From Basidiobolus meristosporus CBS 931.73 (taxonomy: Eukaryota > Fungi > Basidiobolomycota): a stretch of DNA of 64,000 nucleotides. Each line of letters opens with the position of its first letter. The stretch's first letter is position 1. Under the pieces are notes generated by a model. It worked only from the letters and a program-made list of their open reading frames with translations, was not told the DNA's origin and did not search any database. The position numbers and the translations under genes were made by a program. Shown one piece after another: positions 36,861 through 64,000 of the stretch. The stretch is taken from positions 2,723 through 66,722 of the forward strand of contig MCFE01000494.1 of assembly GCA_002104905.1 (NCBI GenBank), read 5' to 3'.

Positions 36861-36880
36861 CCCTAACCCTAACCCTAACC
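36861..36880. repeat. Interstitial telomeric repeat (CCCTAA)3CC abutting a TATA box
   Basis: CCCTAACCCTAACCCTAACC followed directly by TATATAAAA (36881), ~70 bp upstream of the PTS ATG. Confidence 0.9.
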
Positions 36881-37761: not shown

Positions 37762-40700
37762 TTATTGGGTAGCGGCAGCCACGGCTACAGCATAGCTACC
37801 AGAGTGAGAGATGGAAAGCTTGATTTCCTTGAGTCCGGTGCTGTTGACTACCTCCTGGGCTTTGCCAGAGAAGGCGGCCTTAGGGGCACCACTGTCAGCA
37901 GCGGTGATTTCGACCTCCGAAATGTCAATCTTCTCTCCACCAAGGCTGATAATGGCCTTGATGACGGATTCCTTGGCGGCAAGCTTACCGGCCAAGGAGG
38001 CGTTAGGATCGGGCTTGGCGAAGCAGTATTCCAACTCAGCCTTGGAAAGTTTCTTCTCAACTTCTTCCAACTTGAGGCTGTTGATCAGGACAACGTCTAC
38101 ACCAACCCCTTTTTGGTTACCAGTAAGGGCGACGAGCTGCTTGGTAAGAGCAGGATCGCTGTCGACCTGAGCAGAGGTGAGGTCGGATTTGGCGAAAGTA
38201 TAGGTCTTCTTCTTCTCGTCATAGGCAGCGCGGGCCTTGGGGTTCAAGTAGACCTGGGATTCTTGTTCAGGGGTGTAGGGTGGTTCGTTCTTGACTTGAA
38301 CCAAACCGGCAACCCCGGCATATGAATCATGCAAGTAGCGGTAAGCCTTGGCCTGACGGTCATGAGTCTTCTGCTTGTAAGCGTTGTACTCGGACTCGGT
38401 CAAGGCAGCAAGAACGTAGTCGGGATGAATCACCAAAACCTCACCACCGACTTGTCCGAAACCGAAGGATTTCAAGAGACCAGCCTTGACACCGTCAGTG
38501 TAGATGGTGCTGCTGGGGTACAAGAGGTACTCATAGTCCGCAAGCTTCTCATCAACGTTATCGGCGTTACGGTTACCTGGAATGATACCAGTGCTAAGGA
38601 CTTGGATGACTCCGTTCAACATCCATGCAGCGGCAGCACCCTTAGGATGGCCAGTAAGGTACTTCTGGAAAATACCAGGGCAGCAGTTACCAGGAGTACG
38701 GCCCAAGTGGGCGAATTGCTTGTTGACGACTTCGGATTCGTTCTTGTCGTTAGCCTTGGTGGAGGTACCGTGGAACGAGGCAACGCCAATATCGTCCACA
38801 GTGAGGCCGAAGCTGGCAAGGGCACCACGGATAGGAGCAATGCGGGCGTCTTGCTTCCAGAAGTCGTTACCCCAGAGAGTAAGGGCTTCCTTCTCTTGGC
38901 GATAAGCTTCACGTTGGATATGCTCAGTACGCTCACTGACGAAATCTTCCTCGGAGACTTCGAGCTCGCCAGAAGCCTTCTTGGACTCCAGTTCCTCCTG
39001 AAGGTACTCAAGTTCTTCCTCGACCCAGAGTTTGATCTGCTTGCGGCGGTTCTTCAATTGTCTAGCACGGTACTTGATGTCCAAGAGAGGGGATTCGGTC
39101 TTGCCACGAAGCTCACGAGCGGTGGTCAAAACACCCTGTCCAGGGGCAGGAACTGAACGGCCCTCCTTATCAGTAGCAGTGTTGGTGAGAGCGATGATAC
39201 CATAGATAGGCACACCCATCTGAACGGCAAGCTTGGCGGACATAAGGATTTGAACACCAGCACCGTGGGACTCCATGAATCCGGAACGAGTAGTGGTAGT
39301 AGGACGAGACATCTCTCCAGGCTCACGACCACGGGCGAATTCGTCATTGGCATTGCTGGTGGCCTTCATGTTGGCGAATTCGTAAGATCCTTCTTCTTGG
39401 AAGTCATCATAACCACCAACGATCACGATCTTGGCCTTGCCGCTCATGATGGTCTCAACACCAATTTCCACAGACTGGACAGCAGTAGCACAAGCGCCGA
39501 CTGGAGACTTGATGGGACCAGAGGAGGAGAGCAAAAGCATGTTGATCCAGGCAGGCATGGTGTTGATGAATGTTTCTTGGAGAATATCCATTTGCACTGG
39601 TTTGTCGAGCATACGGTCCTTGTACATCTTCTGAAGGGAGAGGGAACCGCCCATACCGGAGCCGGAGCAGTTACCAACTTCGCTGATGTGCACATACTTG
39701 TAGAACTCATAAGGATCGGTGATACCAGAGCTGACCAAGGCCTCTACGGTTGACACGAGAACGTAGAGAGTGATGACATCAACCTGGTCAATGATCTCCT
39801 TGGGGACGCCGTAGCGAGCAGCGTCCCAGCCAGTTGGAATCTGGCCGGCAACCAAGCGATCAAATCGGAGTGCCTTGGGAACATAAATGGCGGCACCCTT
39901 CTTGAAGCTAACGAGCCACTGTCCGGTTTCCTTGACTTCGAAGGCATCCACCTTGTCACCATGCTTTCTCTTGAAGTGAGCGGCTTCTTCGGGACTGGCC
40001 TCAATTGGCTCAAGGTCTTGGTCGATAATGATTTCTTGGAAGAAGGTCTTGTTCTCGGGATCGTAACCGTTGAAGATCTCAGACTCAATGAGACGGATAC
40101 CACTGTGCTTGAGGATATCCTTCTCGTACTTGGTCTTGACATCACGGTCATCGACTGGCTCACCAGTCTTCATATCAACCCAGCCAGTGTATGGTTTTCC
40201 GCTCTTGAGTGGGCCATTATGATGCTTGATGTATCCCATAATCCAGGCCATCTCAATACAACCCTCGAGAGAGAACTCTCCGAAGGCTTCCATCTCCCAT
40301 CTAGTTCTAGAGTTACCCCAAGGTCCGACTTCGGCGAATCCGGTGGCAACGATCACCTTCTCCAAATCCAGCATACCTTGGAGGTGGCTGAGGGACTTGA
40401 GTTCAGTGTAGTTCTTGAGCTCGGGGAAATCGATCTTCAAGTTGGCACGAGGCTTGGCAATGTGCGACTTGTAGAACAACTCGGCAGATGGACCATGGAC
40501 GATCTTATGGTCAATCGCATTGTCGGCAACAATGGCCTTGCGAATCTCGGAGGTGTTTCTGATCTCGGTACGGAGGGATGCGGAGATCTTGTTGAGGTCC
40601 AACACGTACTGGAAACCACCGTTAAGATCGGCCCAGACTGGCCCATTCTCGCTCATCTCGGCGATGGTTGGGTGCATCAAGCCAAGAATGTTGAAGGCCA

Positions 40701-43700
40701 TTTCTTGGGTGGAGAAAGTGCGGACTCCATGCTTCTCAATACCCTCAGCAATCATGTTGTTAGCACTCATGAGACCAGTACCACGGGTCCAGCCAATAAT
40801 GGCTCCGGTGATGGTCAAGTAGCTTCCCCAGCTTTCGGAATACCATCTGTTGAAGAGAGTCTCGAGGGCAATCTTGGATTCGCTGTACAAACCATCGTTA
40901 CCGAAGGTACCGTGGTTGGGTGAGAGTGGAAGAATGACTTGAGCGGGACGGGTGCTGATTCCGAATTCTTGCTTCTTGGTCTTGATGTAGCCAAGCATGC
41001 GGAGAAGGTTGGTCATCATGATACGATGAGCAAGTTCGGATTTGGAGTCGATGTCGCTGATCTCACGTCCGTTCTCGGGAATAGCAGCGAATGGAACAAT
41101 GTAATCAACATCCCAGTTCAATCCCTTGCGCTCATCTCTGTCGTAGATGTAGTCAATAAGAGCTTGGACATCTTGCTTCGAGCCTTGGTTGAAAGGAACA
41201 ACAACCAAGCAGGAGTTCTTGGAACCATGACGGCGATAGATGGATTGGTAGTATTCAGTCACACCACGGCTGAATCTGGAGGTGGTGACGACAACCTTGG
41301 CTCCTCCCGAGAGAAGTCCCTTAAGGATCTCAGCACCAATCGAATCCTTACCGCAACCGGTCATCAAGACGGTCTTGTGCTCGAATGACACTCCTTCCTT
41401 GGCAACGTTGAGAAGGACATCGAGGTACAGGTTGGTTAGTCTTTGGTCGAATTCCCAGCCTTGAGCAGTTTGCTTCTTAAGGTGAAGGAATGGAACGACC
41501 TCCTTCTTTCCGGTGTTGGGTCTAGCAGGCTTGCGGTTCTTGTGCTCCTTGTCACTAAGGATCTTGGGGTTCATGCTCATGGATCTGATGACATCCTTAT
41601 AGAGAGACTTCAACACAAGTTTATCCGACTTCTTGACCTTGTTCTGGTGCTTGATGATCTTGTAAACGCGGAGAAGATCGTGCTGCACCTTCTCGCGGTT
41701 AGAGTACTCGGTGATCTTGCTGCCATTGGTCATCTCCTTGACGTAGTCTGCAAACTTGCGGACATTTGCACGAGGAACCTCGTCATAGAGGATGTCACCT
41801 CTTTCGTTGACCTTGGTTTGGGGAGCGGTAGGGATGGTAACATCCTTGTAAACTGGAGAAGCGTCAAGAACAGCTTCGCAGTTCTCCAAGAGGGTAGTGG
41901 CCAACTCCTTGGCGAGCTTGTAGGTCTCTCCCTTCTCGGTATCCAAGTTGTCAATATAATATCTCATGAATTTGATCAATCCAGGAGTGGCGCGGTTCAT
42001 GACGTGCAAGCATTGGGCAGTGACATCACGATCGACGGCGGTAAGTCTACCGAAGATGATATCGAAGTAGAGATTCAAGGCGTCTTGACGAACCCAGTTC
42101 CAGTAGGAATCATAGCGACGAGCCTTCAAAGCGCTGAAGACAGGAAGGATACCTTGGGCGTAGACTTCACCGTGCTCTGCAACCCATTGATCAAGCTCCT
42201 GTTGAAGCTGATCAGTGGCAACCTTTTGATTCTCGTAGGCCTTGTCACCAGCACGGAGATCGTGGCCAAGGTATTTGGCAAATGCCTCAAGCTGCTTTCT
42301 GATCAAAGCATTTTGCTTGGCTTGAAGAGCATCAAACTCAGCACTGTTCATCACAGCGCCAACAGCAACGGGGCCAGCAGCAGCTCCGCCACTAGAACCA
42401 AGTGAGATACCAGTTCTCTTGGCGTACAGTTGGGCTACACTATCCAACCATGCGTTGGCTTCGGCCTCTGAGCCAAGTCGAGAAGCAGGTTCCATAGTCA
42501 AACCGTAAAGCAAAACAGCCTCAGTACGACCACTGCCAAGACCATAGTTGGTAGACAAATAGGAACGGGCATTGGTCAAGGTAAATCCTCCAGGCATCTT
42601 GCTGGAGATCATCTTGGAAACGAGAGCAGAGGTATGTTTACCGAGAGTACCAGAGAATCCATTGCCCAAGTTCTTGCCGAGCTCCTCGAGAGTGGTCTCC
42701 TCAGACTTCTCAGGAACGGTTCCGAACTCCTTCTGCATGTCACCCAAAATCTCGTTTTGGAGAGTGGACTTGCCACCGACCAGATCCTTGACAGCCTTAG
42801 AAAGTGGCACCTCATCAAGGCTCTTCTTCAATTTTTGAGCAATGATAACGTGAAGGACTTCAGTGGCAGAAACGTTGGCATCAGGGACAGCAGCGGCAGG
42901 TCCGGCAGCAGTTGGGGCAGCAAATGCAACGGCAGCGGGGCCTGCAGCAGGTGCAGCAGCTCCCAAGGCAATTCCGTTCTTCTTGGCATAACCTTGAGCA
43001 ACGGTATCCAACCAGCTCTTAGCATCAGCCTCAGATCCAAGGCGAGAAGCGGGCTCGATAGTCAAACCGAACAAAAGAGCACCATCAGTACGGCCGCTAC
43101 CCAAACCGTGAGCAGAGCTCAAGTAAGTCTTAGCATTGGTGAGGGTGAAACCTCCGGGCATCTTGCTGGACATCATTTTGGAAATAAGAGTAGAGGTATG
43201 TTTGCCAAGAGCACCGGAGAATCCATTGCCCAAGTTCTTGCCGAGCTCCTCGAGAGTGGTCTCCTCAGACTTCTCGGGAACGGTTCCGAACTCCTTTTGC
43301 AAGTCACCCAAAATCTCGTTTTGGAGAGTAGATTTACCACCGACCAGATCCTTCACAGCCTTAGAAAGTGGCACCTCATCAAGGGTCTTCTTGAGCTTTT
43401 GAGCAATGATAACATGAAGGACCTCGGTTGCTGTGATAGGAGCATCGGCAACGGCAGAGGCAGGTCCGCTTGCAACTGGGGCAGGCGCGGCAGCAGCAAC
43501 CGGAGCAGGAGCAGCAACAGCGGCGGCGGCTGGCTTAGGAGCCTCAGCAGGGGCAGCTGGAGCTTCATCCTCAAAGGAATAGTAGATCTCCTTCTCATGC
43601 TTAATATAGCACAAGTTGGTACGACGGTGAGTAAGAGCGTCATCGTAAGCTTGATACTTCGATTTCAAAGTTCTCTCAGCCATGCCAACCAACACAGGGC

Positions 43701-46700
43701 CAGGACCGACTTCGATCAGACGCTCAACTCCAAAGTCCTTGAAGATCTTGTCTTGGGTCTCAATCCAACGCACAGGGGAAGCGAATTGGTAGGCCAACAA
43801 CTCAAGCATGAGGGTGTAACCAAGCTTCTGTTGTTGGGCTGGTGAAGCAACGCTCTCTTCAGTCCAGTTCTTGAGGACCTTGTTGATTCTGGGACTGTTG
43901 GTGATAGCAAGGACATTTTCGAAGTACTCCTTGGTAACTTCGAATGGCTCAGCAGTCAAGTTAGGAATGTACTTGTGAGTAAGGACGTTAACGTCGACAT
44001 CACTTTGACTGATCTTCTTGGCAATGTAGGCACGGAAAGGAGTGACACCGCCAAGCAAGAATGATGAATGGAAAGGCACATCAATACCCTTCAAAGGAAT
44101 GGTAGCATAACCTCTCTCAAGGTTGATAAAGCCATCCTTAGCGAGCTTAGCGGCAGCCTTGTCCAGAGCCTTGGCAATAATTGAAGAGAGTTGCTCCTTA
44201 ACTGCCTCCATAGGCATGGTCTTCAACAAGTTTTGGAGATCAATGTTTTGAATCTTCAAGAAGTTCAAGACGTTGGCGAGGGCATCAAGGTTGCTAAGCT
44301 CACCAGATACAACGTATTGTTGATTCTCAACGTTGAAGTTGACAATCTCCAAGAGACCGTTGCTTTGATGAGCAATGGCGTCAACAACATATCTCAAGGC
44401 GATGTCATCGAAGGTCTTGCCAATACGGCTAGGGTTGACGGCGCACATACCATAGTTGGAACGGCCATGGGCATCACGTTCTACGGCGACTTGCATAGTC
44501 ATACCACGGTAGAACACAACATCAACCAAACTCTCAATAGCCAACACGTTACCAATGGAGGCAAGGGCAGCATACTCACCAAGAGAGTGACCAGCGAATA
44601 CGCAGTCGTTCTGAACAAGTCCCTTGGAGACCATATCCTCAAAGGCAGCCTTCTCCATTAAGGTGAGTGCTGGCTGAGTGAACTGAGTAGCAGACAACAA
44701 ACCAGTAGGAGAGGTGAAGGTATAAGAAGCGGTCTTCTCGGTAATACCAGGGAAGAGAGGAAGAGCCTTGGTATTTCCATCTTGATCAATGGTATCGTAG
44801 GTCATGCTCATGTAGTTTTTACGGATGACCTTACCCTTCTCACCACCGAAGTAGATGGTCTTCTCCTTGGGGTTGTTGCGGACAATGTCGATGATAGAGA
44901 ATCCGTAGTTGATCAAGAAGTGCTGGTCAGCAGAGTCCCAGATTCTCTTGGCAACAGGTGAACTGGCGTACAAGGCCATACCCATACCTTGCTCTTGAGA
45001 ACCTTGACCAGTGAAGACGTACGCAGTGACTGGTTGATCAATCTCGGCGGTACCCTCAATGACCTTGACGTTGTTCTGGTTAACAGTCTCGACCTTGATG
45101 ATCTTCTTTCCGTTCTTCATTCCGATATGGGAAAGCTTGGTCTCAAGACGATCGTTAGGAAGAACCATTGATTGGAAGTTCACATCGTAAGCAGTGACAC
45201 GTTGTGGAGAGTTGTCAGCAGCAAAGATCTCCACGAACTTCTTGGTAGAAGCACTGGTCCACATCCCATGGGTAATGGTTCCGGGAAGTTCAGCGAAATC
45301 GGCGAAGTATGGGTTGACGTGGATGGGATTGTAGTCACCAGAAACAACGGCATAAGCCTCGTTGGAGGCAGGGGAGTTGAAAACGGACGAGAACTCGTCA
45401 CCTTGTGGCATTACAGAGTATCCACCGTTGGCGAAGTTGATAGCCTGCTCAATAGGCTGTCCAACACGCTTGAGATACTCGGTAACTGGGTTGCCATGAG
45501 ATTCGCCGCTTTCGTAGTCGACAGTGGCGATTTGAACAACCTCCTTGGTGGAGATCTTCATGGTGACGGTACCAGTGGTGGTGACCGAGGAGTACAAAGT
45601 CTGGTTCTTGAACTTCAACAAGCTGTTCAGGCGGAAGATGATCTCGGCACCAGGAGTGAGCTCGGGAGCGTTTTCCTCCCAGTTCATCCATTCCTTGGAT
45701 TTCAAGACTGCGATATCCTTCTCGGTCTGGACGGCTACGCGTACAGGGGTCTCAACAATCTTCTGGAAGGTATTTTCGTAATCGGTGAATTTACCGCGGT
45801 ACAAAAACTTGCTGGTAACTTCCATGATAGGCTTGTTATCACGAATGACAACCCCCTTGGCCTCAACCATCTTTCCGGATTCGGTATTTACGATGGCCTC
45901 GATCTCGGAAACAGTGTCAACAATGTCACCACGCTGCAACAGAGAAGCTCCGTCGATCAACCTGAATCCGTTGGAAAGGTGAACCAATCTGAGAAGGTCA
46001 CCGTCGACAATCTTAGGGAAGATAGTCTTAATGATAGACTTCCAACCAACAACGATGGCGAAATCCACAGGGGCGCAAAGGACCTTTTGGCCACGGTCAA
46101 CATAGAGCTCGGCTTGATTACCTACGGTTTGGCAGAATTTGGTGATTTCGTGTCCAAGGACCTGTTCGTCTTTGGCAACGAACTTCTGGTTGGGGTCATT
46201 GGAAAGATCAAGGTGAGAGCCTTGACCGAACCACAAGGCCCAGTAGAACTCCTTGATGCGGTCATTGCGGCCCTCCATGACTTCATGGATGGTGGAATAA
46301 CCTTGGTTGGGGTTGTAAACAAACTTGGACAAGAATGGAATAGCAACGCCATCCTTCTGCTCATAGATAATGACGTCGATAACGTCGCCATTGATCTTGG
46401 CTTCGATGGAAACGGATGAAGCAGTCTCAAGATGAGATGATTGACTCCAAGAGCGTTTATCCGATACAGTGATGCTCTCGACCACCTCGTTGGCGCCAAA
46501 TCGGACTTCGACCTTCTGTTCTAGACGAGGGCGGAACACTTTCTTCATCAAGTTGTCCACGAACATCTTATCTTGGATGATGTAGTTCGAGGTCAACAAA
46601 GCTCTAGCCCAACCATACTTGGGACCAGCAATGAGTTCGAGCCACTCCTCGACTGGTGGGAGGGCACCATTGTCTGAGGTTTCGAAGATTCTGACGTTAT

Positions 46701-49700
46701 CCTTGAGGGTAATCTTGACATCCTTAAGGGCAGAAGGAGTACGAATTGGGCTTCCTCCGAGGTATTCAACTTCAGGAATCAGGGAATCATCGTTACCATA
46801 ATAACGTTCCTTCAAGGCGTTGATGTGACCCTCATGGATGCTATCCAACATGTCCTTGATAGGCTCGTTAACCTTGGTAGAGTAACGAACAGCAACTGGA
46901 CCTTGCAAGATACAAGTACGTTGGACATCTTCATCCAAGACGGCACTCAAATCTTCAGTCTGCCAGAGGGAATCCTTCTTGAACCAGAACTCGATGTTGT
47001 TGTCAAAGACAGGGATGAATGGTACAGGCTTCTGTCCAAGACGAAGGCAAAGGCTGATGAAGTATTGGGCATCTTCGGTAGTCAATTGTTGGTCGAATGC
47101 CTTGGGGTAGTGGGCAAGGAACTTCTCGACGGTCTCCAATGGACTCTCGAGCTCCTTGAAGGATTGCAACTTGGAAGGTTGCTCCTTGGCGATGAATCTC
47201 TCTTCGAGACGACGAATGAAATCACCGACGAGAGCAATCAAGCTGACATCAACCCATCTAGACTCCTTCTTGACGTAAAGCAGCTCGACCAAACGGTTGA
47301 CAACCTCGGAGTAGGTCATCTCCTCCAGGTCACAGGTAGAACCATCGGCCTTCTTACCGAACCAAGGCTTCTGGAAGTCAGCATTGAGGCGACGGATGTA
47401 ATAATCCTTCTTGGCAAGGAGGGCAGGTCCTCGCTTCTCCTTGGCAAGACTGAAGATCTTGTCGTCCATTTCCTTCCAGAAACGAACGGCACGGGTTGCA
47501 ACCTTGTGGATAGGCTCACCCAATTCGGAACGAACGGTCATAATACCACCAGCTTCGCCCTTGTAGGTCTCCTCCCATTGATGATCTTCGACACCTGGAG
47601 CGTCAACAATAGCTTGCTTAACGTCAACTGCGGCTTGACCTTCAGCGGCAACCATCACTCTGGAGCCAAGAAGAACACCATCGAACGGCATAGGAGGATA
47701 ACCGAACTCGGTACTCCATTCTCCGGTAATGTATGGCAAGGTGTCATCGGCACCACCGAAACCGGAACCAGCAATCAGGATGATGTTTGGTTGCTGACGA
47801 ACCGCGGAGTAGGTTTCCAACATAGGCTGATGAGCATCTTCGAAACTGTGATGACCACCAGCACGGCCACCAGTCCATTGCATCAAGATGGGCATATCAG
47901 GGTTGGCGGCAGCGATGGCAAGCACCTGTCTGATAGCAGCAGTGGCTCCTGGCTTGAATGAGATGTGACGAAGTCCCGCTTCTCTAAGATTAGCAATGAT
48001 TTCATTGGCGTTATCCAAAGAGGGAACTCCGGCAGCACAACAAATTCCCTCAATAGGTAATCCCTCTCGGCGCATCGCCTGAACGGTAGGGTATTGGAAT
48101 CCCCACTGGAATGGATTCAAGAAAAGCATGTTGATACTGATGCCCTCACCAGGCTTGGTCATGTCCATAATGCTCTTGACCTTTCCGCGGAGATGTTCGG
48201 GGCTGAAGTGACCACCACCAGCTAACTCGATATGGTAACCAGCATTGATGGTGGCACCAACAAACTTCTCGCTGACGGTGGAAGGTGTCATACCAGGAAC
48301 CATGATAGGGGGCTTACCAAGGAATCTGCTCATTCTAGTATCTACATATACACGTCCGTTGGAAGAAGTCCGGACCAAACGAGGTTGGAAATCCTTGGCC
48401 CAGTTTTGAGCATAGCGGACGGCCGATTTTTCGGAGTCAAACAAATCACCCTTGTAAGAGAGTTCGGGGTTACCACCCTCGAGAGTGCCAGCCAAAATGA
48501 TTCTTACACCAGTGCCTTCCTTGTTTCTGTGTGTAAGACCACCGATACCGGAAGTGGCACCGGGTCCGAAATCAAGAATGTGAGTAACCGAGGCGTTGGT
48601 AGCGGCTTCCCATTGGACGGGAAGAGAGCAGATTTGATCAATCAAATCCAATGTAAGTCTTTCACTCTCACGAAGATCCTTTCCAGAATCGGTAGAGTAG
48701 ACAGGTACAGTAAGAGACTTGGCATCAAACTCCAGATCGTACTTCTGAACATCCTGAGCCAAGATTTCGGAAGCGCCTTGGAGGTAGCTGCTGTGGAACG
48801 GAGCGGTAATGGGTAGGAAACGAGAGGAGAACTTCACCTTACGTTGAGAGTGAGGTACACGTCCCTGGTCCAAACCAGCAGGAGCCTTGATCTTGCGAAG
48901 GGCCAAATTCAAGCCATACAAACTTTGGGGGTGTCCGGTACATACAAAGTTTCTAGGTCCGTTGGTTAGTGTCAACTTGATCTGGCGCTCTTCGGGCAAG
49001 TGAGAGTTGGTGGCGTCAACGTATTTAAGAACCTCCTCCTTGCGCAATCCAGTGACGGACAACATAGGAGTGGGATTGCCCTCGTTGTTAGAAAGGGAAT
49101 CTTGCAAGATGGTGGGGTTCAGAGTAGTGGGAGGATACACTTGGTGGGCACGAGTACCAATCCAGAAGAGCAAGCCAAGTGCCTTCTTGCTGTTGAGGAT
49201 AAACTCCTCATCAGTGGCGGAGGCGGATATGGCAACAGCAGAAATAATACCCTGGCTGTGACCAGTGGCCCCAGAAATAAGGCTTCTGACTTGGCCAGGC
49301 GCCAGGTCAAGCACCTTGGCCATGATATGGTAGTGAAGCAACTGTGTCAATCCAATAAGAGGAAGACTGACAGGAGCAGAAATCAAGTAAGCTTGATCGG
49401 GCTTGGATTCGGGGTTTTCTAACCAGCGAAGAACGTCCAAACCCTTGGTATGAATAATACGAGCCTCGTCATCGTTGGCGAGGTTACGAAGGACACCAGC
49501 CACTTGTTGAACATATGGTCTGGCAAAGCCCTCGTAAGTAACAAAAATGTCATAAAGCTCATCGAAGTACTCTTCGATATTGCCTTGACCACCAAAGATG
49601 GCGAAAAGAGAAGCATGCTTGTCTTCAACGGCAGACACTAAAGCAGATTTGGGGGCAATGCTGCCCTCGAGAAGACCTTGCTCCTTCAGCAGAACATAGG

Positions 49701-50061
49701 CTTCGAAGTAAGCCTTAATAACAGCAATTCTAGCTTCATTGACAAGGCTTCTGGTGACGGCGTGGACATCGTTGGACTTCAAATACTGCTCTCTGAAGTG
49801 AGAGAAGAGGATTTGAATGACTGGGAGGAGTTGCAAGTTTTCATCCTTCTTGTTGTTTTCGATAGCGTAGCTTAGAAACTTGGCAGCTAGCTCTATCTTC
49901 GTAAGCTCTTCGGAAGCAGGATCGGCTGGCTTGTAGGAGGATTGAAAATCCTCACGAATTTGTTCAGCTGACACCCAGATATCGTTGGGAATAAGGATGG
50001 TGATCTCAGTTTTGCCGAACTTGACAGCCAAAGGACGAAGAGAAGCGTTGGAAGCGACCAT
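37762..50061 (-). CDS. FAS: Single-chain fungal type I fatty acid synthase (AT-ER-DH-MPT-ACP-ACP-KR-KS-PPT), ~4099 aa, intronless
   Basis: GATGHSQG (AT); [12 protein letters not shown] (ER); SGDYNPIH (DH); FAGHSLGEY (MPT); two GGKSTLQNE ACPs; KR; PVGACATA (KS); C-terminal AcpS-type PPT; first ATG at 50061. Confidence 0.97.
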
Positions 50062-52833
50062 ATTTACTATAATATTTTTTAACACAAATGCAGGGAGTAT
50101 GAATGTTCACTAAGGTGAAGATTAATGCAAAAAGATGAGGAGGTGATGATTAATGGAACAAGAAGTAAGAAACAATATAACACGGAATTCAGGGGAATAT
50201 TGCAAACAGAAGTGGAATACGATTCCTTGTCGATGAAGCTTTGCCGAAAGGCTTGTGTAGAGAAAAAGAGGGGAGAATTGCTCGCTTATAAAGAAATCCT
50301 TATCCTAGCCCCGAGAAAATTTCCAACTTTGTCGAAGTAGCATTGATCTGGTTGGTTAAGTATTGGTAGAGGTTGTTGAATCATGGCATGATGCCCAAAT
50401 GGAATTATGTACGTGGAATACAAATCAATGATAACGGGGAGGCGATTCTTACCCCGTCTGTTACCGCATCCATCCGAAAATCACCCAAAAATACCGAGTC
50501 CCTGTGCTACCATGGCGAAGTTACCAAGTGACCTAAACATATTCCGCGCAGGTTGACACCCCGTTGACAATTAGCATGGGGTGTTTTAATTGGGCACAGA
50601 GTTCCGCTAAGCGATGCTTGATAGGAAGAATATTGGGGTGGGGGGCGTGAGTGTTGCTTGGCGAATCACAGCGCTCGGCTCTGAATTATCGATCTCTCAT
50701 TGGTGGCTTCTTGCTCAAGTTCATTAGAGATACGAAAACAAGTTACCAACGAAGCCCAAATATGGTGCAGTCAATTCACCATTTCGGACCCCATTGCCGT
50801 AACATTTGGTGTCCCCAGCCTTCATCTACTCAACAGCCTGAACATCTATATTCTACTGCATAATTTCCCACATTAGTTAGATGGGTAGCAGCTATATCTA
50901 TATTGGTACGATACTTTGAGCTGTGTAGAGCTCAATAATGCTTCCACCGATACACGGTGTATGAATGAAAGTGTGTCCCTCACTGTTTCTTTCATGATTT
51001 CTCCCACCACAGAAGAAAAATATCTCAGCTACTAGTGAAGGCGAAGGACGCTTGTGCTGTGTTGTGTCGCTATGCTTGGCATGTGTTTTGTTGAGTGACC
51101 GACTTCTGGTGGCTTGTAAAGCTTCACCATGACTACTCATAATCTGCGCCACAGTCCACACAAAATGGGGCCTTCATAATGCTAAAAAACTGGTTTATGA
51201 GTTTCCCCGATCTTCTGTGTTCGTACGGAACAAGAGATGTCTTTGATTAGGAATTTAGCCACTCATCACACGTACTGTTGGCAATCCGTACGGTGCCTCT
51301 TGACAGATCCACATTGGCTCCATATTACCAAGCATGAGTATTGGAACATTTTCTATCACATAGCGCAATCAGTACCTCCTTTATCGCTGAGGATAGTCAT
51401 CAAGCGACCCGAACAATGACATACCTCGGTTAAATGTTTCGGAGTGAATACCGGTTAACATCCCACAAACCCACAAGAGATCGGGACGATTTGGATGCTT
51501 GGGAGGTTATTAGATTAAAGTACAGGTGTTGGTGTTGTTTCGCCAACACCACTCCATGGTCGGCTATCAGAACTCCACAAAACCTACAGTATTGCTACGG
51601 TATTACTATGGGGTAAAGTGAATCTAGTTTCTGTGCTTGTGTCCTATATTTTGTGGAGAGTATACCCCAGAGAGCCTTACAAACCAATAACTGACGCTTC
51701 ATGGTATCTTCGGGATTTGCTATCCAGTTGCCTTGAGCCAGGACTCTGGGTTAACTGTAAGCTTTCAACATATTTGCATGTCACTGATTTTTAACTGATA
51801 CTAAATTTCCTAAAGAGTTACCAAAATCTGGAATACGGTGATTGGCCTGCTGCACCCAACGTGATGTTGAACAAGAATCATTGTTGGCCATTTCAACCAT
51901 CGGGTAGCCCCAAAGACTACCTGGTACCTATCGACAATCCTGGGCGATCCGCAATATTTCACATATCGATATTGCAGAGTCGTTAATTACTCGCAATTGT
52001 GGTCAGCGTAGGTATTGTTGTGTATCCCGAAGGGTAAAATAACTATATAAGGGTCAGAATGGCTGGTATGTAACAGTTCTTCTCATTGGCTCAATATCCC
52101 GAACGTGACCTTGGTGAGTCGCTTGAATGGATAAAGAGCGAGCATTGATTGGATAGATAGCAGATCTCTGATCAGCATTCATTGGCCCAGAATGACACTG
52201 AGCAATAGAAGGCGATAGATGGATGGGGAACATGCGAACTCACGTAATGAATTTTTGTAACGTGGAAGGCCGAGAGCAATCGCTACCAACTATTCTCAAT
52301 CATACGTCAATGAACCAATCGCCGTAAAATACCGATTTCCTATTGGAAATATGGGTATATTTAGAGAAGTCTGTAGAATTATTTCTGAAACGTGGTCGAG
52401 TCGTAATTTTCCACTTGTTTAAATAGTACTTTGATGGATATTGCTGCATATATAATATAAATTACATGAATTTAGTCATGGGCACAGAATCCCACCACTC
52501 CATGGCTATTTCAGCCGCCAGATGGATCTCTAACCCAAAAGCGGCTTGATATTGGCCCTGGTTAACATTGCTGTGAGTCCTACAGCTGCAAGTTATGATT
52601 CGTTGCATTTCGCCGCAATCTTAGACCAAGTTATTTACGTTTCTGCACCCCTTAAATAGTATCTGTCCACTTAACCTTATTCCTGCCCGGAGTCTTGCGA
52701 TAAGCTTCCGATGGTCATTAAGCAGCCATCTAGCATACCAACATCCATTCTACCACGGAGTCACTCCATCTAATTACATGCAACGGAGTGGGTGAAACGT
52801 TTATTTACAATCTGGTACATATCGGGTCTATGA

Positions 52834-57756: not shown

Positions 57757-58870
57757 TGTCTTAGGAGTCTTGGAGAAATGGAAGTGATTGGGAGAGCAAG
57801 CAGATTTTGTGGTTTGACTAAATGATTATTGAATGTAATAGTGGTATTAATACTTTTGCATGTTCTGGGGTAACAAGCACTGAGGATACATTTAAAAGGA
57901 CCCAAGAACATGTGTGTAAGGATTGGGGCTGTTTGTGTTGTAAAAATTTGTATTTCCACCTAAATATTCACCTAACTTAGTCACTTAGATCATTACCTTC
58001 ATATCTTATAGAATACTGACTAAATTCCTTGTTGGGATTTACTTAGAATATTTGCCCAGAACATGAAAATTAGATAAGTTGTCCAAACAGCCCCAAACTT
58101 TGCACACATGTTCTTGGGATCTTCCGTAACCTATTCTACATGTTTGTTATGCCAAGACCATGTAAAAGTATAAATACTACTTTTACATTCAATAAATCAT
58201 TAAGTGAAAGCCACATAATCTATCTGTCCTCCCAATCAATTCCAATATCACCAAGACTCTTACAACAGTTTGGCCCACTTATCAAATTTTCATGTTGTGG
58301 GTATCTGATGTTTCTGGTGAAAATATTCTTAGTAAATCCCACAAGGAGTTTGGCCTGTATTCTCTATGATTTGTAGGTTAAGAGATAAGTAACCAAGTTA
58401 GGTGACTACTTAGGAGGAATTACAAGCTTTTACAACACTCCCACTAAACTAAATGCTCACAAAGACTAGTCCCAATTTTGACCTAAGATATTCTAACTTG
58501 TCCCTGGCTAGCAGCTTGGTAAATATGTCTGCAATCATTTCATCTGTAGGACAGAAAACTAAGTTAGCTAAGTTATTCTCTATTGCTTCATGAGTACAGT
58601 GATGTCTAATATCTATGTGCTCAGTTATAGCATGAAAAGTTGGATTTCTACCAAACTGTATATATTCACTGTTATCTTGAAATAAAGTAATATGGGTTTT
58701 TTGACAGAAGCCCAAATCTTTAAAAAGCTTTCTTAACCACATTACTTCTTTTGTAGCATCACAGACTGCCATATTCTCTGCCTCTGTGGTGAAAAGTGCC
58801 ATAGTTGTTGGCTCAGACAACAGTCAGACAATCATCAAATTTCTGGTGTGACACTGTACAATTAGTGCCA
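57757..58870 (-). mobile_element. Copia 3' remnant (RNase H, PPT, 3' LTR at 58437-57757) interrupted by a solo LTR
   Basis: ORF 58449-58820: TTEAENMA, HIDIRHH, MIADIFTK; GTGGGAG/TGTTG junction at 58437. Confidence 0.85.
57936..58267 (+). mobile_element. Solo copia LTR with 5-bp target-site duplication GTTTG
   Basis: TGTTG...CAACA termini; GTTTG at 57931-57935 and 58268-58272; flanks rejoin into one minus-strand LTR. Confidence 0.88.
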
Positions 58871-59190
58871 ATTTAGGCTGATAAGTATCAGTGACCAGCA
58901 TAATTTACTGGTCAAGCACTTGTTCGATTGGAATCCAACAAGTTCTAAGGCTAAGGAATGGTCTCACATACCTTCAAGGTAGCCATTACTTCATAGTTAT
59001 TTAAAGTGTTTGCCATCAATTATATTAGATATGTTTGCATTGGAATGATACTGATTGCAGTGCTTCATAACTTCTCAATATTTGTCAGACTGCATGAGCT
59101 TCTTCAGATGAGGTATTACTGGAATATATCTGAAGTGTAAGCAAAATTCTCCTCCTGTGGTGGTGGATTCCTGACAAGTTGGGTTAGGGG

Positions 59191-59438
59191 TGTTGTGAAA
59201 ATTTGTATTTCCACCTAAATATTCACCTAACTTAGTCACTTAGATCATTACCTTCATATCCTAGAGAATACTGACCATACTCCTTATTGGGATTTACTTA
59301 GAATATTTTCACCAGAAACATCAGATACCCACAACATGAAAATTTGATAAGTGGGCCAAACTGTTGTAAGAGTCTTGGTAATATTGGAAGTGATTGGGAG
59401 GACAGGTAGATTATGTGGCTTTCACTTAATGATTTATT
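59191..59438. repeat. Composite LTR fragment (5' half on +, joined to the end of an opposite LTR)
   Basis: TGTTGTGAAAATTTG start; junction GGGCCAAAC/TGTTGTAAGAG is the reverse complement of the junction at 58263-58280. Confidence 0.8.
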
Positions 59439-59745
59439 GGGTTAGGGGGAGACAGTCACCAACAGGCAAAATCTTTATTTCAGTTGAAACAAAGAAGCCA
59501 GCACTACTGTTGTAGCTTTGATACAAGAGTGTGTAGCTGAGGGGAATTTGTAGGTAAGTTAATAAGAAGTGATGATAGTTCTTCAGTGCCCAAGACACTG
59601 TTCAGTGGGAAGGGGGATAGCAAGAGAGGTAAGAATGACTTGTGAACAACATTAATAAGGGGAATATGATAAGAATTGATATTCATCATAAAGGGAGTGT
59701 GCTGCTGCAGATATTGCTGCCAAAGGTCTGTCAAGTATTTCAGGT
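59439..59745 (-). mobile_element. 5'-truncated copy of telomeric LINE family A (unit 1)
   Basis: Near-identical to 60963-61268; encodes the last ~80 aa of the long ORF plus the same 3' tail. Confidence 0.9.
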
Positions 59746-59933
59746 AGGGGGGATGATCATCACCAAAGGGTGAAATCATTATTTAAATAATAAATAAAGA
59801 AGCCAAGTTTGAATATGAATATCTGAGATGCAGGGGTTAGGGGGGGAGGAAAGTCACCAAGTGGTGAAATCTTTATTTACTTATGACAAGTATCTAAAGA
59901 AGCCAAGTTTGAATATGAATATCTGAGATGCAG
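59744..59933 (-). repeat. Two short 3'-tail units (unit 2, variant tail; unit 3, 100-bp period)
   Basis: Each begins with (T)AGGGGGG and carries TCACC-N4-GGTGAAATC.TTATTT and AAAGAAGCCAAG; both end in TTTGAATATGAATATCTGAGATGCAG. Confidence 0.85.
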
Positions 59934-60388
59934 GGGTTAGGGGGGGAGGAAAGTCACCAAGTGGTGAAATCTTTATTTACTTATGACAAGTATCTAAAGA
60001 AGCCAAGTTAATCTGAAGTAGTTCCTAGTTAGCTAGGTCTGAGAGAGGTTTCCTGGAAAGCCAGGCCTGAGAAGTGAGAATCTGAATATATCTGAGCTAA
60101 GTTATACTGGTTTGCGGTAGCTGAATTGTGGCCGGAATGGCCAGTAGACTGGGGGAACTGAGATGAATTTCTGGGCGATCACTGGCCAAATTTGCTAGGC
60201 AAATCTGACCAATTAGCATTTCAAGGATTTCAGCCAATCAGAGCCTTTACTTTGCCCGATGGTTGATCAAGCCATCTCCCAATGAGCACACATCAATTTA
60301 TTGATCAAATTTTGCTGGATCCAGGAATTGAACCCACAACCATGGGAATGGAAGGGTTAGGGATAACCACAAGGCCAAGTGTCCTTGG
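59934..60388 (-). mobile_element. tRNA-headed SINE-like element, full-length copy 1 (unit 4, ~455 bp)
   Basis: Minus-strand A-box TGGCCTTGTGG (60377-60367) and B-box GGTTCAATTCC (60334-60324); shared 3' tail; homologous to 63256-63785. Confidence 0.75.
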
Positions 60389-60888
60389 TTAGGGGAGGGA
60401 AAGTCACCAAGTTGGTGAAATCTTTATTTGAGTTAAGAACTAATCTAGGTACAAATAAAGAAGCCAATTAAGAGGTCTAGAACCTCTCTAATAAGTAATC
60501 TAATTTATGTTTTGTCTCATCTCTAATGTTTGTTTCAATAAAGTAAAGCACATCAGGGGTAAATATAAAATTCAGGGGTTTTGGGGGAAGTACAAATTGT
60601 AGATGTTTCTGATCAATATAATCCAAGACTGGAACCCAGCCTGGGATTAGGTGTAGTAGGAAAGGTGTGTGGACTTGTAAGTAGCTCTGCCACATAGATC
60701 TTAGATGGTCCTGAGCCAGTAGTCTTGGTTTCTCAGCTTTGTGAAGTTTTGAAGCAAGCTCTGTTACTACAGCAGAGCCAACCAGTGTGTGCCAGCAAGA
60801 AGATTTCAGGGAGGAGTTAGATTGAAGCCATTGTTTGATGGAGGGGTTATGTGATTTCTGAAGTTTGACTAGGAAGGAAGCACAGAGT
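60387..60888 (-). mobile_element. 5'-truncated copy of a second, diverged telomeric LINE family B (unit 5)
   Basis: Open frame 60888-60477 aligns without gaps to the family A C-terminus (NP.IK.W, SCW.T..G, EKP.L, WQ.YLQ.HTPF); same tail motif. Confidence 0.82.
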
Positions 60889-60972
60889 TAGGGGGGGAGG
60901 AAAGTCACCAAGTGGTGAAATCTTTATTTACTTATGACAAGTTTCTAAAGGGTTAGGGTTAGGTTAGGGGGG
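60887..60972. repeat. Very short SINE-type tail (unit 6) capped by an internal telomeric tract GGGTTAGGGTTAGGTTAGGGGGG (60950-60972)
   Basis: Direct reading. Confidence 0.9.
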
Positions 60973-63255
60973 AGACAGTCACCAACAGGTGAAATCTTTA
61001 TTTCAGTTGAAACAAAGAAGCCAGCGCTACTGTTGTAGCTTTGATACAAGACTGTGTAGCTGAGGGGAATTTGTAGGTAAGTTAATAAGAAGTGATGATA
61101 GCTCTTCAGTGCTCAAGACACTGTTCAGTGGGAAGGGGGGTAGCAAGAGAGGTAAGAATGACTTGTGAACAACATTAATGAGGGGAATGTGATAAGGATT
61201 GATATTCATCATAAATGGAGTGTGCTGCTGCAGATATTGCTGCCAAAGGTCTGTCAAGTACTTCAGGTAGGCCAGCTTGGGTTTTTCTGACTGCAGAATA
61301 AAGTGAGCAAACTTCTTGACTTCAGGATCTCCAAGTATAGTTCTCCAGCAGGAGCCAGGTGTTGTGTGGTGTGTTCTCTTCCAGGCCTTAATCAGTGGGT
61401 TGTTGCAGTTGTGAAGTCTGAGGTATAATCTGGTTCTAAGGTAGAGAAGTCTGATCTTATAGGGCATAAACCCAAAAGCACCAAGAATAGCATGTCTGTA
61501 GGGGCATTCAGGCAAATGAGGCACCAAGGAGGTAATGCACCATACTGCAAACTTGTCAAGCTTAGTGCAGTCTCTAGAAGTAAGAGAGAGAAGTGGTAAG
61601 CCAAATTCCAGGACAGGGAAGACAAACTGCTTGAGTAGAAGGAGGCAGCTGGGAGCTGAAGTTGTAGGAGGAGTAACAGCCAGTAGCTTGTGGAGTGCCT
61701 GTCTTGCTAGGATAATTCTCTTCTTCAGGTGTGCTCCAGAGTCTAGTCCAGTAGGAAGGAAAGGAAAGCCAAGATATGTAGCAGAAACCTGAGCAGGTAG
61801 AGTGGAGTTCTCCAAGTTGATGGGAGAGCCCAAAGGTACTGTCTTTGCAATGGAAAGCTGGAGATTATTCTTCTGCAGATACTGGTGGATGGTCTGGGAG
61901 TCTTGTTGCACATTGGAGGAGGATATTCTGATGTCATCAGCAAAGAGAGTAACCAGGCAGTCAGCTGAGAGTCTTGGGAAGTCATTCAGGAAGATGGCAA
62001 ACAGTATAGGACCAAGCACAGAGCCTTGAACCACTCCATTAGGAACTGAGAACACAGCTGATTGCTCACTTGGGTGCAGAATTCTTGCTTGTGGATCCAG
62101 AAACAGAGACCTGACAAGGAGGGTGAGAGAAGTGCTGGAGAAGCATTGCAACTTGGACCAAAGCAGATTTCTGTCAACTGAATCAAAGGCCTTAGTAATA
62201 TCAAACAGAACAAAGGGATACTTGCACTGGAGAGTGTGATCTTGGCTAAGTATGACTGCATATTCCAAGGAGAGGCCAGGAACAAAGCCAAACTGTGCAG
62301 GATGAAACTTGAGGGAGTCAGAGTAGAGCTCCTGAGCAAGCAGAAGCTCAAACACCTTTCTGCAGGTGGGCAGCAGAGATATTGGCCTGTAGGAGCTAGG
62401 ATCCAGGTGCTTTCCTTTACCCTTGTACAGTGGCAGAACATTTGCAAAGGACCATTCCTCAGGAGTAGAAAGCTGGGCTGAGCATTGCTGAAACAGTGGA
62501 AGCAGAAGTGCAGACATGGCCTTGGTACTAGCCTTCAGAAGCTCATAAGAGATTGTGTCCACACCTGGAGCAGTAGAGTTGGGAAGCCTCTTGAGCACAT
62601 TATGGATTCTCCTTTGATCAAGTGCAAGTGGGATGGGCAGAGTCTTGAAGTCAGGATGAAAGCCAGGAGTTGAGTACTGCTTTGTAGAGAAGAAGATGTT
62701 AGCCAGCTGTTCTGTTGAAGGTAACTTCCTGGAACAGGGCCTCATTGCTCTGTAGAGTCTTGATACTGTTCTTGTTATAGAGTTGGAAGATTGCAGAGGC
62801 AAAGAACTCATAATATGATCCCAGAGCTGAGTATGCAGAGTGTGGTGAATTGCCTTGGAGTGGTGTATTGCTGTCAGGAGGAGTTTCTCTGTTTTTGGGT
62901 TAGGGAAACTCAGGTAGCTTTGTTGCAGGGCTGAAACAATGGATTCCCATTTTCTTGAGGTAACAGCAGTAGTCTTGCATGGCAGTGAGAGGGAGGCAGA
63001 CACCAGAATCAGATGCTTCACAAAGAGCCAGGCATAGTTGAGATCATCTGGCAGAGAAAGTAGCAAACTGGCAAGCTTCAAGTAGTTCCCAAAGTCTTTC
63101 TTCTGATTCTTGGTAGCTTTGTGTGTGAGCACAGTAAGTTTTGGCAGCTTCTTCTTCACAACTGGTTGCATAGAAAGGGACCAGGCTGGGTGGTCAGATG
63201 CTCTCAAGGATCCTAGCTCAGCTCCAGAGAATTGCTTGACTTCATTCACAAAGTA
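60963..63255 (-). mobile_element. Telomeric non-LTR retrotransposon family A, long copy (unit 7), 5'-truncated
   Basis: Bounded by GGTTAGGGGGG on the left and GGGTTAGGGGGG on the right; contains the 740-codon RT ORF and a ~54-nt 3' UTR. Confidence 0.92.
61027..63249 (-). CDS. LINE-type reverse transcriptase ORF (740 codons, no in-frame ATG at its 5' edge; residual APE SDH motif)
   Basis: APGVD, YRPISLL..RKVFE, QFGF, DITKAFDSV, GVVQGSVLGPILF, FADD, YLG motifs; no CCHC, RNase H or PD-(D/E)xK motif seen downstream. Confidence 0.93.
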   Translation of the reverse strand: MNEVKQFSGAELGSLRASDHPAWSLSMQPVVKKKLPKLTVLTHKATKNQKKDFGNYLKLASLLLSLPDDLNYAWLFVKHLILVSASLSLPCKTTAVTSRKWESIVSALQQSYLSFPNPKTEKLLLTAIHHSKAIHHTLHTQLWDHIMSSLPLQSSNSITRTVSRLYRAMRPCSRKLPSTEQLANIFFSTKQYSTPGFHPDFKTLPIPLALDQRRIHNVLKRLPNSTAPGVDTISYELLKASTKAMSALLLPLFQQCSAQLSTPEEWSFANVLPLYKGKGKHLDPSSYRPISLLPTCRKVFELLLAQELYSDSLKFHPAQFGFVPGLSLEYAVILSQDHTLQCKYPFVLFDITKAFDSVDRNLLWSKLQCFSSTSLTLLVRSLFLDPQARILHPSEQSAVFSVPNGVVQGSVLGPILFAIFLNDFPRLSADCLVTLFADDIRISSSNVQQDSQTIHQYLQKNNLQLSIAKTVPLGSPINLENSTLPAQVSATYLGFPFLPTGLDSGAHLKKRIILARQALHKLLAVTPPTTSAPSCLLLLKQFVFPVLEFGLPLLSLTSRDCTKLDKFAVWCITSLVPHLPECPYRHAILGAFGFMPYKIRLLYLRTRLYLRLHNCNNPLIKAWKRTHHTTPGSCWRTILGDPEVKKFAHFILQSEKPKLAYLKYLTDLWQQYLQQHTPFMMNINPYHIPLINVVHKSFLPLLLPPFPLNSVLSTEELSSLLINLPTNSPQLHSLVSKLQQ

Positions 63256-63785
63256 GGGTTAGGGGGGAGGAATGTCACCAAGTGGTGAAATCTTTATTTA
63301 CTTATGACAAGTATCTAAAGAAGCCAAGTTAATCTGAAGTTATTCCTAGAAAGCTAGGTCTGAGAGATATCTTCCTGGTAAGCCAGGTCTGAGAGTTGAG
63401 AAGCTGGGTGGTACTATATTTCCTAGTTAGCTAGGTCTGAGAGTGGTTTCCTGGAAAGCCAGGTCTGAGAGGTAAGAATTTGAGTATTTCTGAGGTGAGT
63501 TGTACTGATTTGCGGTAGCTGATTTGTGGCCAGAATGGCCAGTAGACTGGGGGAACTGAGCGGTATTTCTGGGTGATCACTGGTCAAATTTACTAGGCAA
63601 ATATGACCAATTGCATTTCAAGGATTTCAGCCAATCAGAGCCTTTACTTTGCCCGATGGTTGATCAAGCCATCTCCCAATGAGCACACATCAATTTATTG
63701 ATCAAATTTTGTTGGATCCAGGATTTGAACCCACAACCATGGGTATGGAAGGGTTAGGGATAACCACAAGGCTAAGTGTTCTTGG
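63256..63785 (-). mobile_element. tRNA-headed SINE-like element, full-length copy 2 (unit 8, ~530 bp, ~75-bp internal duplication)
   Basis: A-box TAGCCTTGTGG (63774-63764), B-box GGTTCAAATCC (63731-63721); ends at the same 5' position as copy 1. Confidence 0.75.
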
Positions 63786-63786
63786 T

Positions 63787-64000
63787 TTAGGGTTAGGGTT
63801 AGGGTTAGGGTTAGGGTTAGGGTTAGGGTTAGGGTTAGGGTTAGGGTTAGGGTTAGGGTTAGGGTTAGGGTTAGGGTTAGGGTTAGGGTTAGGGTTAGGG
63901 TTAGGGTTAGGGTTAGGGTTAGGGTTAGGGTTAGGGTTAGGGTTAGGGTTAGGGTTAGGGTTAGGGTTAGGGTTAGGGTTAGGGTTAGGGTTAGGGTTAG
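63787..64000 (+). repeat. Terminal telomere, (TTAGGG)n, ~35 repeats
   Basis: Perfect TTAGGG array to the end of the window, G-rich strand 5'->3' outward. Confidence 0.99.

Follow-up and report, generated by a model that had tools for sequence, protein, structure and literature searches.

A stack of APE-type LINEs and SINEs with predicted telomere-complementary RNA tails at a chromosome end of the fungus Basidiobolus meristosporus

Introduction

Telomeric retroelements are central to the debate on the relationship between telomerase and retrotransposons and on the way in which Drosophila could lose telomerase. To our knowledge, pairing of a telomere-complementary RNA tail with the G-rich strand is known only from endonuclease-less Penelope-like elements, and the published fungal telomeric retrotransposons all have a restriction-like (REL) endonuclease. 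Here we describe a stack of retroelements that lack long terminal repeats (non-LTR retroelements) at one chromosome end of the fungus Basidiobolus meristosporus CBS 931.73, at positions 59439-63786 of a 64,000-nucleotide stretch of contig MCFE01000494.1 (the window, to which all coordinates without another label refer). The stack combines long and short interspersed nuclear elements (LINEs and SINEs) that carry the same kind of telomere-complementary 3' tail, and the LINEs encode a reverse transcriptase (RT) together with an apurinic/apyrimidinic endonuclease (APE) domain in the second of two open reading frames (ORF1 and ORF2). It is best explained as the subterminal part of a chromosome end, built by successive outward additions of such elements.

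Among described systems, Athena of rotifers and Coprina of fungi and other organisms are terminal and attach to exposed G-rich overhangs via reverse-complement telomeric repeats at the 3' end of their RNA (PMC8557442). The Basidiobolus elements share with them the terminal location, the reverse-complement telomeric 3' tail and the coexistence with telomerase repeats. Unlike them, they depend on an APE-type LINE enzyme, an ORF2 placed after an ORF1, in which an endonuclease is present and the RT is nearest to L1 ORF2p. None of the other marks of Penelope-like elements was found, be it their type of RT, the lack of an endonuclease or a hammerhead motif (no Rfam family at E ≤ 1 in 59100-63800).

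TRAS and SART of Bombyx, Tribolium and aphids (R1 clade) resemble the Basidiobolus elements in being LINEs with APE and RT that lie in fixed orientation beside telomerase repeats. Their 3' ends are poly(A), and a sequence-specific endonuclease directs their insertion into duplex (TTAGG)n. The elements described here have no poly(A), their tail is complementary to the telomere and their junctions mostly hold at most 1.5 repeats; nor are they, as a rule, flanked by repeats on both sides, the upstream flank usually being a truncated element. SART1 requires at least three telomeric repeats (PMC7265360). With HeT-A, TART and TAHRE of Drosophila the stack has in common the head-to-tail arrays of 5'-truncated units, the 3' end toward the centromere and a telomere-like strand bias. 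Drosophila has no telomerase, its elements join via poly(A), and TART and TAHRE retain the APE domain although they add to ends. In Basidiobolus, by contrast, we found a TTAGGG cap, a TERT-like gene and a tail able to pair with the telomere, and no poly(A).

The fungal elements MoTeR (Pyricularia), FoTeR (Fusarium) and Cnl1 (Cryptococcus) have a single ORF with a C-terminal REL endonuclease (CRE/SLACS group). The Basidiobolus elements, too, are non-LTR elements associated with the telomeres of a fungus and point their 5' end to the terminus, but their ORF2 has an N-terminal APE and no CCHC...RHD...R/KPD motifs. Both the REL endonuclease and the orientation of the 5' end toward the chromosome terminus are reported for MoTeR, FoTeR and Cnl1 (PMC12857005), and a survey names MoTeR alone for fungi (PMC10088271). 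Finally, as in UnaL2 and UnaSINE1 of the eel, an example of stringent-type recognition, a noncoding element with candidate boxes of the RNA polymerase III (Pol III) type bears the 3' stem-loop tag of its LINE partner; unlike the eel pair, the Basidiobolus pair acts at chromosome ends and its tag ends in a telomere complement. An earlier note, made by a model from the sequence alone, did not recognize this combination as described in fungi, and the REL endonuclease of the published fungal telomeric elements (PMC12857005) agrees with that view. A search of the open-access literature turned up no account of telomeric retroelements in Basidiobolus and none of a SINE specialized for telomeres.

Architecture of the stack

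The window ends with its contig (C806, 66722 bp), right at the telomere tract. This cap (63786-64000, + strand) consists of TTTAGGG and then (TTAGGG)35.7 running to the contig end, with 100% matches over 63787-64000 (Tandem Repeats Finder, TRF). Within the last 4.6 kb before it, the stack of same-orientation units spans 59439-63786. A 41-nt tail occurs in it eight times, always on the + strand (59441, 59745, 59839, 59939, 60390, 60890, 60964 and 63260; family D3 of the repeat search), and a regular expression for the tail, run over the whole window, returned the same eight copies only, which bears out the eight units in one orientation that had been read from the sequence. The motif GGTTAGGGG occurs 7 times, all on the + strand, where 0.35 occurrences are expected and none of 100 shuffles reaches 7. 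Read on the minus strand, the units end in ...UCACC-loop-GGUGA-N7-8-CCCC(C..)-UAACC. Reading of the sequence revealed neither poly(A) nor target-site duplications at the eight units or at the junctions examined, in line with the earlier description. Most units also share the start claimed for them, the exceptions being unit 2 (TAGGGGGG) and unit 6 ((AG)TTAGGGGGGG). What did not hold is the idea that the elements form the very chromosome end: a telomerase-type tract caps them, and a TERT-like gene is present in the genome, where Telomerase_RBD scores a match above its curated cut-off. Telomerase presumably makes the TTAGGG cap.

The proximal limit of telomere-marked DNA is an isolated telomere seed, GGGTTAGGGG (59181-59190, + strand; GGTTAGGGG match at 59182), and in short-read contigs the sequence preceding 59190/59191 varies. 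Between the seed and the stack lies a fragment of another, unrelated high-copy repeat (59191-59438), which does not carry the tail of the units and is found at other ends in either orientation, with BLAST matches of 85-92% on both strands in three of the other stretches examined (L014, L016 and L023). Its depth in short-read contigs is very high, and other copies continue past 59439.

All eight units are read on the minus strand. Unit 1 (59439-59743) is the 305-bp 3' end of LINE family A and an older copy, 96% identical to 60968-61267; its median identity to 28 other copies is 97.0%, against 99.0% for unit 7. Unit 2 (59744-59833), 90 bp of a short family with tail type D, is 97.7% identical to L011:349-435, and its joint with unit 1 runs via TAGG, which is also found in the parent sequence CAGGTAGGCC. 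Unit 3 (59834-59933, 100 bp) combines a SINE-type tail with a type D body and is one copy of a perfect tandem duplication at 59795-60009 (period 100, 2.2 copies, 100% matches by TRF) that takes in the whole of unit 3 and reaches 76 nt into unit 4, so that the two do not necessarily stem from distinct events. Unit 4 (59934-60386) is a 453-bp SINE with a complete head and its RNA 5' end at 60386; it is 89-96% identical to 63256-63786 and shows 94-97% identity with SINEs in four other stretches (L005, L008, L016 and L020).

Farther out, unit 5 (60387-60886) is the 500-bp 3' end of LINE family B, with the C-terminus of ORF2 at 60477-60695 and 98% identical copies in L005 and L012. Unit 6 (60888-60950), identified by sequence reading and the repeat search, is a SINE tail fragment of ~63 bp and is separated from unit 7 by a short telomere seed (GGTTAGGGTTA...; 60951-60961, + strand; sequence reading and junction table). 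Unit 7 (60962-63255) is a 2.29-kb copy of LINE family A whose 5' truncation falls within the last part of the endonuclease domain, nearly all of which is thereby lost; its RT ORF is intact (61027-63249, minus strand, 740 aa, RVT_1 E = 3.4e-26), and its median identity to 20 genomic copies is 99.1%. Unit 8 (63256-63785), a full-length SINE of ~530 bp with copies elsewhere that are 93-96% identical, has its head abutting the telomere tract. The elements have sense strands poor in G (14-17.5%, with 26-29% C), and the chromosome's G-rich strand therefore stays G-rich across the stack, as has been reported for other retroelements of telomeres; GC skew is +0.27 to +0.30 at 60001-64000 and at most 0.12 in the rest of the window.

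Distribution in the genome

The earlier note had proposed that the tail be mapped genome-wide and be confined to chromosome ends. Its 16-mer GGTGAAATCTTTATTT occurs 1739 times, 1589 of them forward and 150 reverse. The first 100 tails listed fall on 26 contigs, ten of which are 170-345 kb long, and none of these tails is more than 25 kb away from the contig end expected from its orientation. Similarly, 45 of the 46 RT copies on contigs of known extent are within 10.2 kb of the predicted end (the remaining copy is taken up below). The 23 stretches examined each have tails on a single strand, never on both, in agreement with a one-way arrangement in which the 3' end faces the centromere. Dispersed internal copies with target-site duplications and random orientation at other ends, either of which the earlier note had named as a refutation, were not encountered among these tails and RT copies. 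The repeat (TTAGGG)6 is found 6728 times forward and 68 times reverse. Telomere-bearing contigs are nearly all written with the telomere on the right, and reverse arrays, such as that of contig C27, mostly stop before a CCCTAA tract; this strand skew looks like a property of the assembly.

Intact ORF2 copies that are ~99% identical stand at dozens of ends in differing contexts. This bears on a reading in which the units spread between ends at the DNA level, by unequal exchange, break-induced replication or tandem duplication, rather than by ongoing retrotransposition. Subtelomere exchange is common in fungi, and the perfect 100-bp duplication at 59795-60009 is of the kind that such a process leaves. 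The variety of contexts around near-identical ORF2 copies speaks against it, as does the fact that the junctions are nearly all different in truncation point, G-run (4-12 nt) and telomere phase, and we regard this explanation as very improbable.

The autonomous LINE

At least 60 copies of family A in the genome, among 1622 first-look candidates, are 98-99% identical to the window ORF, and most have a 922-codon open frame. A full copy in another stretch (L003) encodes a 299-aa ORF1, a single in-frame TGA and a 917-aa ORF2. The TGA-CTN context and the common frame of ORF1 and ORF2 are kept: 16 of 16 family A copies read GCC TGA CTA (L003:4252-4269, minus strand), and four diverged relatives (L085, L086, L087 and L092) have TGA CTA, CTC or CTT at the ORF1-ORF2 boundary. 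The pattern suggests that the TGA may serve programmed stop-codon readthrough, which would yield an ORF1-ORF2 fusion. No Pfam family matched ORF1.

The RT of ORF2 (RVT_1 E = 2.6e-25) has its catalytic FADD at residues 613-616 and L1 ORF2p as its best solved match (5.9e-13). Pfam found no RNase H in ORF2 and nothing C-terminal of the RT, and the motifs of REL endonucleases (CCHC, RHD/N and R/KPD) are missing. Since the RT copy in the window is cut at the end of the endonuclease domain, the earlier assignment to the APE type could be checked only on full copies elsewhere. There, sequence searches of the N-terminus gave a sub-threshold Pfam match to Exo_endo_phos_2 (E = 3.5e-4) and, with a five-sequence APE profile against PDB, a marginal match to ExoA alone (E = 2). 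Alignment with 21 APE+RT proteins showed the N, Y, GDxN, D and SDH motifs to be present. An AlphaFold2 (AF2) model based on the resulting 22 sequences reached a predicted local distance difference test score (pLDDT) of 85.6, superseding an initial, poor model from five sequences (pLDDT 53.6). A Foldseek search with this model matched 158 solved chains at E ≤ 1e-3, all of the APE1/ExoIII type and including the L1 and TRAS1 endonucleases. The N-terminal domain of ORF2, as modeled, is an AP-endonuclease fold (Foldseek E of ~1e-8), and the assignment is thus upheld on the full-length copies.

One residue departs from the usual pattern, the metal-binding Glu being Asp (LIDV, ORF2 residue ~31; L003:4158-4160, minus strand) in each of the five related lineages. 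The remaining catalytic residues are retained, and the altered active site is thus a conserved one. In a comparison of family A with a relative of 80% identity, the ratio of nonsynonymous to synonymous substitution rates (dN/dS) is 0.14 in the endonuclease, 0.06 in the RT and 0.13 in the C-terminal part, with dS of ~1.1-1.6, and the endonuclease is therefore maintained by selection.

The claim of a second autonomous-type family was borne out by unit 5. Its 72-aa ORF aligns to residues 816-887 of P0005 with 58% identity (E = 2e-30); P0005 is an APE+RT protein of 890 aa and shares 48% identity with family A, and since the ORF thus matches the C-terminus of an APE+RT protein, the second lineage is real. 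Beyond the Basidiobolus-like group, the nearest database proteins are ~30% identical in the RT only and have uninformative names, a few of them "jockey", and the Atlas returned only generic APE+RT clusters. Variable 5' truncation with a constant 3' end, as expected of LINEs, was found; the poly(A) or simple-repeat tail and the target-site duplications of LINEs were not, and the tail consists of a C-run and a telomere complement.

Relatives of family A occur in other public samples, with ORF2 proteins 63% and 80% identical to it. Their elements end in ...CCCCCTAACCC(TAA) followed by a head-to-tail tailed unit, and the downstream sequence differs between samples; tail and stacking are therefore conserved features of the lineage and not an accident of assembly. 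Two relatives (L085 and L086) stop before the tail, the latter because its sequence, a public Logan contig, runs into an Illumina adapter (L086:3830-3852, AGATCGGAAGAGCGTCGTGTAGGGA).

The SINE and the shared RNA tag

The head of the unit 8 SINE contains a B-box-like GGTTCAAATCC (minus strand of 63721-63731) and an A-box-like TTAGCCTTGTGG (minus strand of 63764-63775), which by eye match at 10 of 11 positions each and are plausibly spaced. ARAGORN, run on the window, and Rfam, searched at E ≤ 1 over 59100-63800, called no tRNA, hammerhead, hepatitis delta virus (HDV)-like or other RNA family, and both a tRNA origin of the SINE head and a ribozyme-made 3' end are therefore unsupported. The heads of units 4 and 8 also carry GGGTTAGGG (CCCTAACCC in RNA), at 60356-60364 and 63753-63761, ~25-30 nt from the 5' end; once a full-length copy has been added, a telomere-repeat unit in this place lies close to the very tip of the chromosome.

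Five tail types, those of family A, family B, the SINE, the short family and a further family at other ends, share the pattern UGGCUUCUUUAUUU...AAAUAAAGAUUUCACC...GGUGA. RNAalifold, given 11 tails including those of relatives, folded them into two hairpins of 10 and 5 bp whose loops vary, in total 15 pairs, three of them with compensatory changes. The two-hairpin tag and the tail after it are common to the SINE and the LINE, as expected of a SINE and its partner, and the earlier reading of a SINE-like partner with the same tail was correct. The common hairpin tag is likely the signal that lets one RT mobilize all families. As best explained, these comprise two related lineages, A and B, of LINEs with APE and RT, together with a SINE of the Pol III type and one or more short noncoding families; the best account of the predicted 3' tag of their RNA is two hairpins, a C-run and up to ~9 nt of telomere complement (...CCCCCC-UAACCCUAA-3').

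Junctions and the mode of addition

We compared 55 junctions from the window and 22 other stretches. The G-run at the junction is 4-12 nt long, and the telomere phase before it measures 1-9 nt in 50 of the 55; the other five have 13, 13, 13, 19 and 27 nt. The terminal tract, in contrast, has at least 35 repeats. GGTTA precedes the G-run even where the sequence upstream is nontelomeric, and it is therefore templated by the element RNA and part of the element. The sharp drop past 9 nt suggests that the RNA tail may hold ~1.5 repeat complements. Upstream of the tail there is mostly another unit, truncated at differing points and often directly adjoining. Where the parent sequence was identified, microhomology at the joint is 0-4 nt (in the window, CAGG-TAGG at 59744 and AAGTAG at 63256), and it reaches at least 2 nt in 9 of 24 clean cases, compared with ~1.5 expected.

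Short-read data were available as DNA contigs of the source strain and of one other sample with the same species label; they were compared with the sequence proximal to the terminal TTAGGG tract and reveal joints, not molecule ends. In the contigs of the strain, many truncation points are joined to the same tail starts (60961-8, 60387-92 and 59841). We considered an assembly artefact and rejected it, as thousands of independent short-read contigs have the same kinds of joint and the relatives have the same layout.

The near-absence of repeats at the junctions fits addition onto tract-less ends. From the junction anatomy we infer that priming takes place on free ends, and the role of the endonuclease and the formation of the RNA 3' end are likewise matters of inference. 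The sequence of events would be as follows. A chromosome end would lose most or all of its TTAGGG tract, and the 3' end of the G-rich strand would pair with the RNA tail over 0-9 nt. The RT of ORF2 would recognize the hairpin tag and extend the end, copying the RNA outward and usually halting early, with 5' truncation as the outcome. The complementary strand would then be filled in, telomerase would recap the new end, and the next erosion would permit the next addition. Such a cycle, in which the tail of the RNA, complementary to the telomere, lets cDNA start on eroded ends of the G-strand and telomerase recaps them afterward, is in our judgment somewhat more probable than not.

Age order within the arrays agrees with growth outward over time. 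In seven within-array pairs of family A units, the proximal unit is never closer to the young cluster than the distal one; the window has 97.0 for the proximal and 99.0 for the distal unit, L007 has 92.6 and 99.8, and L006 has 98.7 and 99.8. These values also bear on an account in which whole chains arise in a single event, the RT jumping from one RNA to the tail of the next, so that the first junction alone is a true target. Several units are indeed very short (61, 90 and 100 nt), the joints show microhomology of 0-4 nt and in some cases 1-3 nt of filler, near-identical neighbors occur (e.g., in L004, L014 and L017), and full-length SINE heads are joined straight to the next tail. Units of very different divergence nevertheless meet across junctions of at most 9 nt (92.6% vs. 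99.8% in L007, 97.0% vs. 99.0% in the window), some junctions contain real repeats, and the truncation points are mostly internal rather than at RNA 5' ends. Template switching as the general source of the stacks thus appears improbable.

The APE domain raises another possibility, that of endonuclease-dependent, site-specific insertion as in TRAS and SART, with the enzyme nicking the G-rich strand at TTA^GGG in a duplex tract and the nick priming synthesis. The fold is present, its catalytic residues are retained under purifying selection, and the TRAS1 endonuclease is among the structural matches (template modeling score ~0.62). TTA is moreover the commonest sequence before the G-run (13 of 55 junctions), and five junctions contain 2-4.5 true repeats. 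If nicks fell at random in a tract that has at least 35 repeats, however, anything from 0 to 35 of them should remain proximal to the insert, and 50 of the 55 junctions have at most 1.5, many of them on a truncated neighbor. So short a recognition site would be found genome-wide, yet the copies are confined to ends, and some junctions are without any TTAG (e.g., in L013 and at L004:4818). The poly(A) that SART1 requires for accurate initiation (PMC7265360) is missing, and all five lineages have Asp in place of the canonical metal-binding Glu. Taken together, we find insertion at a nick in the tract unlikely, though it is the most probable of the alternatives.

Several observations weigh against priming by the RNA tail on eroded ends. 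The RNA 3' end is a prediction from DNA sequence. The copies used for the age-order comparison were picked for youth, and subfamilies or old source copies can mimic age. The very short units of 61-100 nt and the near-identical neighbors would fit template switching in one event. An endonuclease has been retained that an element priming on ends would not obviously need, and lineages only 48-63% identical all keep D121, N123, D166 and S195-D196-H197. Finally, the one exceptional RT copy (C781:57002-59221, + strand) lies 10.3 kb from the wrong, right-hand end of a 69.6-kb contig; the array there could be inverted, the copy could be internal, or the contig could be misjoined.

Surroundings of the stack

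The rest of the window holds ordinary genes and remnants of other elements. A single ORF of 4107 aa (37762-50085, minus strand) encodes a fused type I fatty-acid synthase (FAS beta, FAS alpha and phosphopantetheinyl transferase), and a PDR-type ABC transporter at 12330-16325 matches K493DRAFT_235423 of B. meristosporus CBS 931.73 with 100% identity, which confirms the source. The window also encodes an ArfGAP, a sulfate permease and a family-2 peroxidase. Of the copia-type LTR remnants, one has an RVT_2 ORF (5687-6667), and another, just proximal to the stack (58449-58820), looks, on inspection by eye, like the RNase H part at the C-terminus of a copia-type polyprotein and has no Pfam match. 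An interstitial (CCCTAA)3 at 36861-36878, opposite to the terminal tract in direction, is noncoding, ~0.9 kb past the point where the fatty-acid synthase ORF ends at its 3' side; no retroelement tail adjoins it, and it may be a site for a telomere-repeat-binding factor.

Discussion

What is new here is the strategy of a telomere-complementary tail in an APE-type LINE whose endonuclease is under selection, together with a SINE and passengers that use it via a common tag. The earlier note's observation is confirmed and its interpretation holds in large part, with the mechanism of priming as a proposal. The scale is considerable: at least 1739 tails stand at what seem to be hundreds of ends of contigs, and the fungus, which can be cultured, still has telomerase. 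We tentatively suggest, with some doubt, that this Basidiobolus guild of APE-LINEs and SINEs could be a second, telomerase-independent means of end healing, in which the RT would work like a telomerase with a very long template and the Glu-to-Asp endonuclease would have been repurposed, for example, for primer trimming. A LINE would then have independently invented, at hundreds of ends, the strategy of the endonuclease-less Penelope-like elements.

The system makes testable whether LINE RTs prime on natural chromosome ends, what an endonuclease does there and whether such elements compete with telomerase or back it up. For the fungus itself, the stack may buffer housekeeping genes, such as that of the fused fatty-acid synthase 9-22 kb away, against erosion of the chromosome end.

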